This document shows positions 4,482 to 7,137 of a stretch of DNA of 64,000 nucleotides, one piece after another. Source of the DNA: Camelus dromedarius (lineage: Eukaryota); assembly GCF_036321535.1 (NCBI RefSeq), contig NC_087444.1, positions 73,904,001 through 73,968,000 on the forward strand, read 5' to 3'. Position numbers and translations under genes: made by a program. The notes beneath the pieces were generated by a model. It saw only the letters and a program-made list of their open reading frames with translations, did no database searches and had not been told where the DNA came from. Numbering within the stretch: position 1 is the first letter of the stretch; the number at the start of each line of letters is the position of its first letter.

Positions 4482-7137
4482 TCAGACGAGCGCGAGCTTT
4501 AAGCTGCCATAGTTGGAGTTCTCGGTGCGGTAAGCTTGTGGCACGCTGTAGATGCCTGACACGGGCTTCCAGTGGGGGCCGCCCCAGGGCAGCTCTAGCG
4601 GGCAGAAACGGTCGAGCCGGTGGAGTGGGTGCAGCGGGGGTCTGTAGGATTCCTGAGCCAGAGACAGCGCCCCGCAATGCGGCACAGCTGGCGTCATTAG
4701 GCTGCCGCGAGGCACGCGGATTTTCGGTGGCCGAGGCAGCCGAGAAGAGTGCGGACTGGGCTGCTGCTTCGGGCCGTGGCCCCAGACCTGGGGCGTCTCC
4801 TCGAAGCTCCAGTAGGTCAGCGAGCCCTTGGGAGGGCATCCCGACAACTCCTTGCTGTTGGGGGTTGGGGTGGAGGCAGGATGGGGAGGGCACAGCTGGA
4901 TCCACGGGATGAGGCTGAGGTTCAGACCTCAGGACCTGAGGAGGCTGTGGAACTCCTGCGTTTCGAGGCGAGGACACATTTGTAGGAATCGGGGACCCTT
5001 TAGGAAGCATGGGGATGGTGACTCCTAGCCTGGATTCCTGCATCCTCGAGGTATTTAAGGGCCTGGAATCTAGGACTTTCGCATCCTTGGAAAGGAGTAT
5101 CTGGGGACTCAAATACCAAAGGAGGCCTGTCCTAGACCCTCAGAGCCACACCCCTAGATCCAGAACTCCCTCTTGGGCCCTTTGCAGGCTTCATGTTCCT
5201 GAGAGTTGATACTAAGGATACCAGCACCCCCCCCCCTTGAAAAAAGTAGGGGCTGGTTTCTTGCACGTGCAGGCTGAAAGCCAAGACTACTGAGTCAGAC
5301 CGGGGAGCCAACACCAGGTGACTCGGGGTCCCACCAGCCTATGAGGGGGCTGTGCCAAGCGAGAACCAAGGCTCACTTCGAGTAGGCCTTGAAGTCCCGA
5401 GCCGTCGTGGTCAGATAGGGCTGATGGCGATCCAGGATGCCCTGGTCAGATACTGTGAAAGGCCGGCCGGCCAGTTTGGAATTCTTCGTCCAGGGGATTA
5501 GAGCCTGAGGAGGGATTAGCAAGAAAGTTTTCAAACCCCATTCCATGCCCTGTGTCCCAGACTGAGAATTTCTCTTCCTTCTACCTCAACAGCTCTTCTG
5601 AACCAGGCCCAGACACCCGCTGCCAGAACCAGAATCCTTCCTGACCAATCGCACGCCAGTGCACTTCAGCATCGGTCCCCAAATCAGAACTCTTACTAGC
5701 CTCACATCCAAAATCCAAATACTTTCTGCCTGTCTTCGAACACAAAGCCAAGCCCCCAGCCACCAAAAAGCCTCCCCGGCTCTGCCCCAGACTCCAACCG
5801 TCCAGGTCCCGCCACTGGAATTCAGCAGTGCCTTGGGCAACCATTCCTCCTTACTTCACCCAAACCGGCAAAGCCTAGCAACGCCTCCAGCCCCAAATGA
5901 GTCTCAGAATATTCAAGCTCCGCCCACACGTCCTGTCCACCGCCTAGTTCCGCCCCCAGCCTCAGTACAGCCTCCTAGGCCCGCCTCAGGGTTTACATGT
6001 TGCGCCTCCAGCCTCAGAGCTGGGGTTTCTGGTTTCCAGTCCCCTCTTCCTCTGGCCTCACCTACAAAGGTCCCAGCCCCTCCCCCAGTGTACATAACCT
6101 TCTGATTTGGCCCCAGACTCTCTGGCCACACCTCTAGACTTAAAATTCCTTCCGAACCCGCCCCAGGGTCTCAGTTGGGTCCCTAGCCTCTAAGACCCCC
6201 TAACCCCTCCCCGGGCGCTCCAAGTTTTGCCAGACCCTGCCAGCGCGGTCTTAGCTACCTGGGAAGGACCCCCGCGGTGGTGGTCTGCAAGCTCCAGGGG
6301 CTGGGGACCGACATGGGTGGTGGAGGGCGGCTCCAGGCCGGGCCAGCCGGTGTACTGCGCCCTAGTCTCACTGCACTGGTACTTTGTGGTCAGAGGGAGG
6401 CGCCAGCCGCGGTGTCTGAGCTGGGGAAGGCGACGCGGGGACCCAACGTGAGGGTGCACGGGATTCCAGGGCGGTCCTCAGCCCTGTCTCCCGTGGATCT
6501 GGGCATCCCAGAGCCTTACTTTTTCCCCTAAATCCTTGATCCCCACAGTCCGCCTGGGGTCCGCAAGATCTGGGGCCTCGGGCTGCGCATAGGGCCCGCC
6601 GTGGGTCTTGGGCACACAAGCTGAGCCCGAGGTTGTCTCCCATCTGTTGATGACCTCGTCGAAAGCCCAGATATGCAAATCCTGCTTTGCGGCTGCGGGC
6701 AGGGGCTCCGCGACCGTGGACTGGGGAGAAGGTGAGGGACGTCAGCTGAAAGGACATGGGAATCTGGCCCGCCATCCCTGATCTCTTCCAGTGAGTCCCC
6801 AGGCCTTTCCTCCCCTGGCCCCTCTTCTCTCACACCCAAGACTCTGGGACCCTTCTCCTTCAGTCAGACAGGAATTTAAGCCCCCAGTCCCCTTTTCTCT
6901 CAGCAGGTGTTTGGATCGCCAGGCCCCTCCTTCAGTCTGGGCCCCAGTTTCCTCTTGGCCTAGAGCCTAAGGTCCTCTCACCTGCACAGTGGGCGGAGGA
7001 AAGGGCACGGGCGGGATAAAGCGGTGAGCGACGCCACTGCTGGTGAGATGCCAGCTGGGCCAGAATCCAGGTACCTCAGTCCCAGAGATGGGGGACCAGG
7101 GGGCACCATAGCGCAGAGCTAAGTTCCGACCCGCCAT
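4482..7137 (-). CDS. SAXO3: Mn-motif microtubule inner protein, stabilizer of axonemal microtubules 3-like, 339 aa, 5 exons
   Basis: Exons 7137-6982, 6720-6520, 6420-6259, 5504-5377, 4854-4482, all GT-AG with matching phases (0,0,0,2). Total 1020 nt; ACCATGG Kozak context. Protein [16 protein letters not shown]...[13 protein letters not shown]...[12 protein letters not shown]...[16 protein letters not shown]. Gene structure is well supported; the symbol rests on recalled human sequence and position next to LHB. Confidence 0.82.

Follow-up and report, generated by a model that had tools for sequence, protein, structure and literature searches.

A five-exon gene between NTF4 and LHB, very probably the camelid SAXO3 orthologue, and its relation to the LHB transcription unit

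A five-exon gene encoding 339 amino acids, located between NTF4 and LHB on the minus strand of the window (the whole stretch of DNA that was analysed, 64,000 nucleotides from Camelus dromedarius), is very probably the camelid orthologue of SAXO3, stabilizer of axonemal microtubules 3. This identity had been proposed in a first-pass annotation, and the call is correct, with support from a match to a chain of a solved structure, an NCBI-named protein of Camelus bactrianus, synteny, intron phases and dN/dS. The gene is ordinary and already known: HGNC and NCBI list it as SAXO3, three cryo-EM structures contain its protein, and it is annotated in the sister camel. Our result is a correct call, from raw sequence, of a gene that is missed by ORF tracks and often mislabelled as LHB, and not a discovery.

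Gene model and identity

Enumeration of GT or GC donors and AG acceptors gave a 1020-nt open reading frame of 339 amino acids on the minus strand, with its ATG at 7137 and a TGA stop at 4484-4482. When each exon was searched separately against the sequences of solved structures, all five proved to be colinear, end to end, with chain Bq of PDB 8OTZ, the 338-aa "Stabilizer of axonemal microtubules 3" of the bovine sperm doublet microtubule, at E values ranging from 1.5e-18 to 2.3e-50. The coding part of exon 1 (7137-6982, 156 nt) specifies residues 1-52 and matches bovine residues 1-52 (E 4.5e-26); exon 2 (6720-6520, 201 nt), which is in phase 0 at both ends, specifies residues 53-119 and matches bovine 53-119 (E 1.7e-33); and exon 3 (6420-6259, 162 nt) specifies residues 120-173 and matches bovine 120-173 (E 3.7e-25). 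Exon 4 (5504-5377, 128 nt, phase 2) contributes residues 174-215 and two bases of codon 216, and aligns with bovine 174-215 (E 1.5e-18). The coding part of exon 5 (4854-4482, 373 nt) supplies the last base of codon 216 and residues 217-339, aligning with bovine 217-338 (E 2.3e-50). The introns of 261, 99, 754 and 522 nt are all of the GT-AG type, with pyrimidine-rich acceptors and phases 0, 0, 0 and 2, and the ATG (7137-7135) lies in a strong Kozak context (GACCATGG).

The earlier proposal that five exons join in phase to a reading frame of this length was thus reproduced. Other in-frame combinations of donors and acceptors are present in the same interval and would yield frames of 999-1023 nt; the 1020-nt combination was chosen among them because it agrees residue for residue with bovine SAXO3 at every junction. 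Since residue 216 is encoded by a split codon, the exon junctions are confirmed at residue resolution. Exon 4 had been noted as missing from the ORF track, as it indeed is: the exon sits inside a frame of 57 aa (5373-5546), and the track begins at 60 aa.

Matches to other solved structures and to database proteins point the same way. All five exons also match chain Ha of the mouse structure 9V10, which its depositors labelled "Luteinizing hormone beta", and the sea urchin chain 7M of 8SNB, "SAXO3(LOC115918676)", is matched by exon 2 (weakly, E 0.79), exon 3 (urchin residues 95-150, E 5.8e-5) and exon 5 (residues 191-318, E 2.3e-12). With exon 5 as query, a set of 1.8 billion representative proteins yielded only 39 relatives, many of them fragments, and a word-indexed search with the pangolin orthologue returned 137, most of which NCBI calls SAXO3. 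Named orthologues number more than 100 in mammals and reptiles, and are also found in sharks and bivalves. The closest database protein is SAXO3 isoform X1 of C. bactrianus, with 98.5% identity over 339 aa.

The window protein was also compared with individual orthologues. Bovine SAXO3 (8OTZ chain Bq, also 9FQR) is colinear over its full length, has all five of the motifs described below and shares the gene neighbours found in the window; the window protein is one residue longer, with Cys for Leu at position 87 and Cys for Arg at position 276. Buffalo SAXO3 (P0076), which is near-identical to the bovine protein, has about 78% identity to the window protein and the same exon borders. Residues 131-469 of the 469-aa C. 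bactrianus X1 protein differ from the window at five positions (S28N, N77S, G226D, C276R and P309A), and 2 of 125 residues in exon 5 differ between the window protein and a C. dromedarius model, so that the DNA analysed corresponds exactly to neither record. Sea urchin SAXO3 (322 aa), whose model places it at A12-A13 of the A-tubule with a periodicity of 48 nm, is more distant: identity is about 30-35%, exons 3 and 5 are significant and motifs 2, 4 and 5 are held in common, whereas exons 1 and 4 are undetectable by single-sequence search.

Upstream of the conserved ATG the SAXO3 frame continues without a stop for a further 230 codons (7138-7827), and an in-frame ATG occurs at 7500. The product could in principle be a longer, 469-aa form starting at 7528, like C. 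bactrianus isoform X1, since no in-frame stop intervenes upstream of 7137 as far as 7827, and the X1 model maps to 7528-7433 and then continues into exon 1. We consider this unlikely. Orthologues from cattle, mouse and other species begin at MAGR; murid cDNA contigs extend only 22 or 57 nt upstream of the MAGR ATG; the Kozak context of the ATG at 7137 is strong; and the extension is of low complexity and matches nothing else. No other species supports an N-terminal extension of SAXO3, and the 130-aa extension of X1, from its upstream start, is probably an annotation artefact. The region from 7138 to the NCBI start at 7528, on the minus strand and in frame with the ATG at 7137, is probably 5′ UTR and not coding.

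Transcription and the relation to LHB

RNA libraries from the reproductive system, in several studies, contain 20-37% of the words sampled from 4482-7137; DNA runs contain 100%, and the exons account for 38% of the stretch. Some of these libraries also contain words from intron 3. When intron 3 alone was queried, RNA libraries of one study contained 15-43% of its words, and runs of two other studies did not appear among the matches listed. Because intronic words occur in some of the same libraries, the word shares show transcription of the locus and not splicing. Splicing itself can be seen in a murid: two assembled RNA contigs from different runs (L014 and L015) carry the orthologous SAXO3 coding sequence without introns. 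The alignment of L015, which covered window positions 4821-7300 only, falls into four blocks whose ends coincide with the borders predicted for exons 1-4 or come to within about 12 nt of them; the exon 1 block ends exactly at 6982, and the exon 4 block ends 14 nt short of the donor. Spliced SAXO3 mRNA is shown in the murid orthologue only, and the exon junctions of the window are predicted from its sequence.

The murid contigs (L015:1-2331, L014:1-3619) do not end with SAXO3. Past the SAXO3 stop they continue for about 850 nt, enter LHB exons 2 and 3, which are spliced in frame, and reach an AATAAA, 19 nt beyond which the contig ends. In the window, the minus-strand stretch downstream of the SAXO3 stop (4481-2477) contains the whole LHB gene, and its first poly(A) hexamer is the AATAAA of LHB at 2482-2477. 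On the minus strand, the interval from the SAXO3 stop to the LHB AATAAA at 2482 contains none of twelve common poly(A) hexamers, and neither AATAAA nor ATTAAA is found between the SAXO3 stop and LHB's site in six other species; this absence is expected by chance (about 0.2 sites expected), the DNA being GC-rich. We suggest that the SAXO3 mRNA of the window probably lacks its own terminator and extends to the LHB poly(A) site, a read-through that is shown in the murid and would apply here by extension.

A side observation concerns the opposite strand. One murid contig (L014:2492-3619) extends beyond LHB and takes in antisense sequence from the 3′ end of RUVBL2, which indicates that the convergent transcripts overlap or abut closely enough to be assembled jointly.

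The relation between the two genes has a bearing on transcripts already described. A passage of PMC5651699 that cites Zhang et al. 1995 reports "complicated" LH-beta transcripts, confined to spermatids, in rat and mouse testis. These spermatid transcripts are probably SAXO3-LHB read-through RNAs. For the broader proposal, that SAXO3 lacks a poly(A) site of its own across amniotes and that the spermatid 'LH-beta' transcripts of rat and mouse are SAXO3 mRNAs with an LHB 3′ UTR, we judge the chances to be even; the basis is RNA for one murid and, for camelids and other species, missing hexamers together with merged gene models. If the proposal is true, spermatid 'LH-beta' transcripts would be no evidence that germ cells make LH.

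The first-pass annotation had also remarked that the gene is easily missed or merged with LHB, and the databases bear this out, with both mislabelled and fused models. Seven database proteins named "lutropin subunit beta" that have no cystine-knot domain are SAXO3, and entries from mouse, pig, cotton rat, mole-rat, aye-aye and colobus carry the protein under the name 'lutropin subunit beta' or 'Luteinizing hormone beta'. The mislabelled or fused records comprise P0171, P0173, P0124, P0153, P0070, P0077, P0115 and P0094, as well as PDB 9V10 chain Ha. Among them, P0094 is a 493-aa model in which SAXO3 and LHB are fused in frame, with the cystine-knot domain included. Two models are unusual in other ways: P0153 closes with LHB exon 3 translated in a different frame, and a 654-aa koala model called 'KCNA7' groups with the SAXO3 of the wombat. 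For annotation, the value of these observations is that "lutropin subunit beta" proteins without a cystine knot should be read as SAXO3, and that signals credited to LHB in expression data from testis or ciliated tissue may be those of SAXO3.

The same observations might be taken to mean that the five exons are testis-specific upstream exons of LHB, so that the protein would be part of a long LHB isoform. The exons do share a strand with LHB and lie about 1.2 kb upstream of it, and the interval contains no poly(A) hexamer; the murid contigs carry both genes in one RNA; databases place the SAXO3 protein under LHB; and spermatid 'LH-beta' transcripts are on record for rat and mouse, in the passage of PMC5651699 cited above. 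This reading is nevertheless very unlikely. The SAXO3 frame is closed by a stop codon that precedes the LHB exons of the murid RNA by about 850 nt. The encoded protein contains no cystine-knot domain, is present in sea urchin and bivalves, and is resolved in 8OTZ as a distinct axonemal protein, free of sequence derived from LHB. SAXO3 is better understood as a gene in its own right, with a message that probably extends into its neighbour.

Conservation of the locus

The minus-strand order in the window is KCNA7, NTF4, SAXO3 and LHB (about 3249-2564), with RUVBL2 converging on the plus strand. The upstream neighbour was recognised by the neurotrophin sequence of the NTF4 coding exon (8988-9632), which lies on the same strand as SAXO3. 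The order NTF4-SAXO3-LHB-RUVBL2 is kept in Dipodomys, Sorex, Neotoma, Eubalaena, Bubalus and Rhinolophus, and wombat and leatherback turtle have SAXO3-LHB-RUVBL2. Six orthologous proteins (whale, buffalo, bat, kangaroo rat, shrew and turtle) were mapped exactly to their genomic loci. Five of these loci keep the four-gene order and the turtle has SAXO3-LHB-RUVBL2; an NGF-family gene occupies the position of NTF4 in five orthologous loci.

Gene structure is conserved as well. All six mapped orthologues have five exons with phases 0, 0, 0 and 2, and in four of them (whale, buffalo, bat and kangaroo rat) the first four exons measure 156, 201, 162 and 128 nt. Every exon length in whale and bat is identical to that of the window, and buffalo and Dipodomys differ only in exon 5. 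Shrew and turtle depart in one internal exon as well, the shrew in exon 4 (107 nt) and the turtle in exon 2 (189 nt). Maximum-likelihood dN/dS was 0.41, 0.31 and 0.29 in comparisons with whale, buffalo and bat. The NG86 method gave 0.31-0.47, with bootstrap 95% upper limits of 0.69, 0.54 and 0.41 for the same three species, and a value of 1 was reached in 0 of 300 codon bootstraps per pair.

The first-pass annotation had named three conditions that would refute the gene. Two of them are answered by the orthologues with the same exon phases and by a dN/dS well below 1, and both results argue in favour of a real gene. That the locus is a decaying or non-coding copy whose frame is open by chance is the least credible of the alternatives: it could draw on evolution that is fast for a structural protein (dN/dS 0.3-0.5) and on two Cys replacements at otherwise conserved sites, but 1020 nt run without a stop or frameshift, every splice site is of the canonical type, no bootstrap replicate brings dN/dS up to 1 and the exon structure is kept from turtle to mammals.

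Short motifs, SAXO membership and proposed role

The protein had been described as an Mn-motif protein like SAXO/MAP6, and this label stands in part. One published rule for the Mn unit is [TS]-[TS]-x4-[YF] (PMC10973386); an alternative formulation requires T or S at position 1 and F or Y at position 7 (bioRxiv 10.64898/2026.08.28.747525). All five motifs lie on the minus strand, and the second rule, [TS]x5[FY], fits three of them. Motif 2, SETRAQY (6372-6352), fits this rule, and its S and E are invariant from bivalves to mammals. Motif 3, YLTTTARDF (5417-5391), conforms to [TS][TS]x4[YF] and to the pattern offered in the first-pass annotation. Motif 4, SLAQESY (4664-4644), again fits [TS]x5[FY] and is preceded by a conserved VPHxG. 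Motif 1, WETTSGSAC (6642-6616), satisfies the rule only in species in which the final residue is Tyr; that residue is Cys (TGT) here and H, Y, L or Q in other species. Motif 5 (4532-4503) is one residue short of the Mn rule, with Y324, E327 and S333 invariant. As for the first-pass pattern itself, written as a regular expression, YLTTTARDF and YRTENSNY match it, and the other three strings are looser matches.

Motif counts were set against those of shuffled sequences. The strict first-pass pattern has two matches (P 0.0015), the published minimal pattern has one (P 0.33), and [TS]x5[FY] has five against 2.8 in shuffles (P 0.14), so that enrichment alone does not establish Mn repeats. Conservation is more telling. 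All five motif blocks are conserved from bivalves and sharks to mammals, and this conservation is the real evidence that the motifs matter.

Homology to the classical SAXO proteins is another matter, and it is here that the Mn label falls short, there being no Pfam or profile link to SAXO1, SAXO2 or MAP6. No Pfam family matches any exon or the full-length orthologues, and the SAXO1-2 family (PF05217) gave no match at E up to 10 with each exon or with the full-length orthologues; as a positive control, PF05217 found SAXO1 and SAXO2 in the same genome at E 2e-182 and 7e-48. When a 30-sequence SAXO3 alignment was compared by hhalign with the main SAXO1 and SAXO2 exons of the genome, the probabilities were 1.9% and 0.6%, with matches of motif length only. 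Nor is there an N-terminal cysteine cluster like the one that constitutes motif 1 of classical SAXO proteins (PMC3280300): the 339-aa protein is free of Cys throughout residues 1-86. On the Pfam and profile negatives and the lack of this cluster, SAXO3 is a SAXO in name and type of motif and not through detectable homology. It resembles SAXO1, SAXO2 and MAP6 (PF05217) in having short motifs of the [TS]x5[FY] type and in binding microtubules from the lumen, but its five motifs lie 46-75 residues apart, whereas those proteins carry a dozen regular 35-residue repeats.

Two smaller points concern individual motifs. The best local hhalign matches, which are not significant, pair motif 2 with an Mn repeat of SAXO1 and AYRTENS, in motif 5, with a repeat of SAXO2. 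The C-terminal Y-x-T-E-x-x-x-Y-G-S (4532-4503), in which the string SNYG occurs and the Gly is nearly invariant, is reminiscent of the SNYG module found in other inner proteins. The syntax of that module is [ST]-N-x-x-[ILVY]-G (PMC10973386), and we rejected a formal match for TENSNYGS, in which too few residues separate N from G.

Work on orthologues provides a basis for proposing a role. The A-tubule location of bovine, mouse and sea urchin SAXO3 is known from cryo-EM (8OTZ, 9V10 and 8SNB; PMC11834534, PMC13066092). SAXO3 lies in the A-tubule lumen at protofilaments A12-A13 with 48-nm periodicity (PMC11834534). It is an inner protein common to sperm and epithelial cilia, and Tekt1 knockout sperm lose both it and the tektin bundle (PMC13066092). 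By analogy, camelid SAXO3 would be a microtubule inner protein, running as a largely extended chain along the luminal wall of the A-tubule of axonemal doublets. To judge from the orthologue structures, this chain would adjoin the tektin bundle, with a 48-nm repeat, in both sperm and epithelial cilia. The five conserved motifs, three of which follow the Mn rule, may form small helices that dock at tubulin interfaces, and the protein may contribute to the stability of the lattice and link the lattice to the tektin filaments. That the camelid protein acts like its orthologues is a transfer made at 78-81% identity.

The window protein has Cys at positions 87 and 276, where most species have H or Y and R, respectively. 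The first-pass annotation had drawn attention to the Cys that ends motif 1. The residue is there, codon 87 being TGT (6618-6616), but as a notable change it does not hold up: position 87 varies naturally among H, Y, L, Q and C, and the camelid residue is simply another of the states that it takes. Codon 276 (4676-4674) is TGC, Cys, at a site that is Arg in C. bactrianus and most vertebrates, inside the conserved VPHRG block, and the replacement of Arg by Cys there is a CpG-type change.
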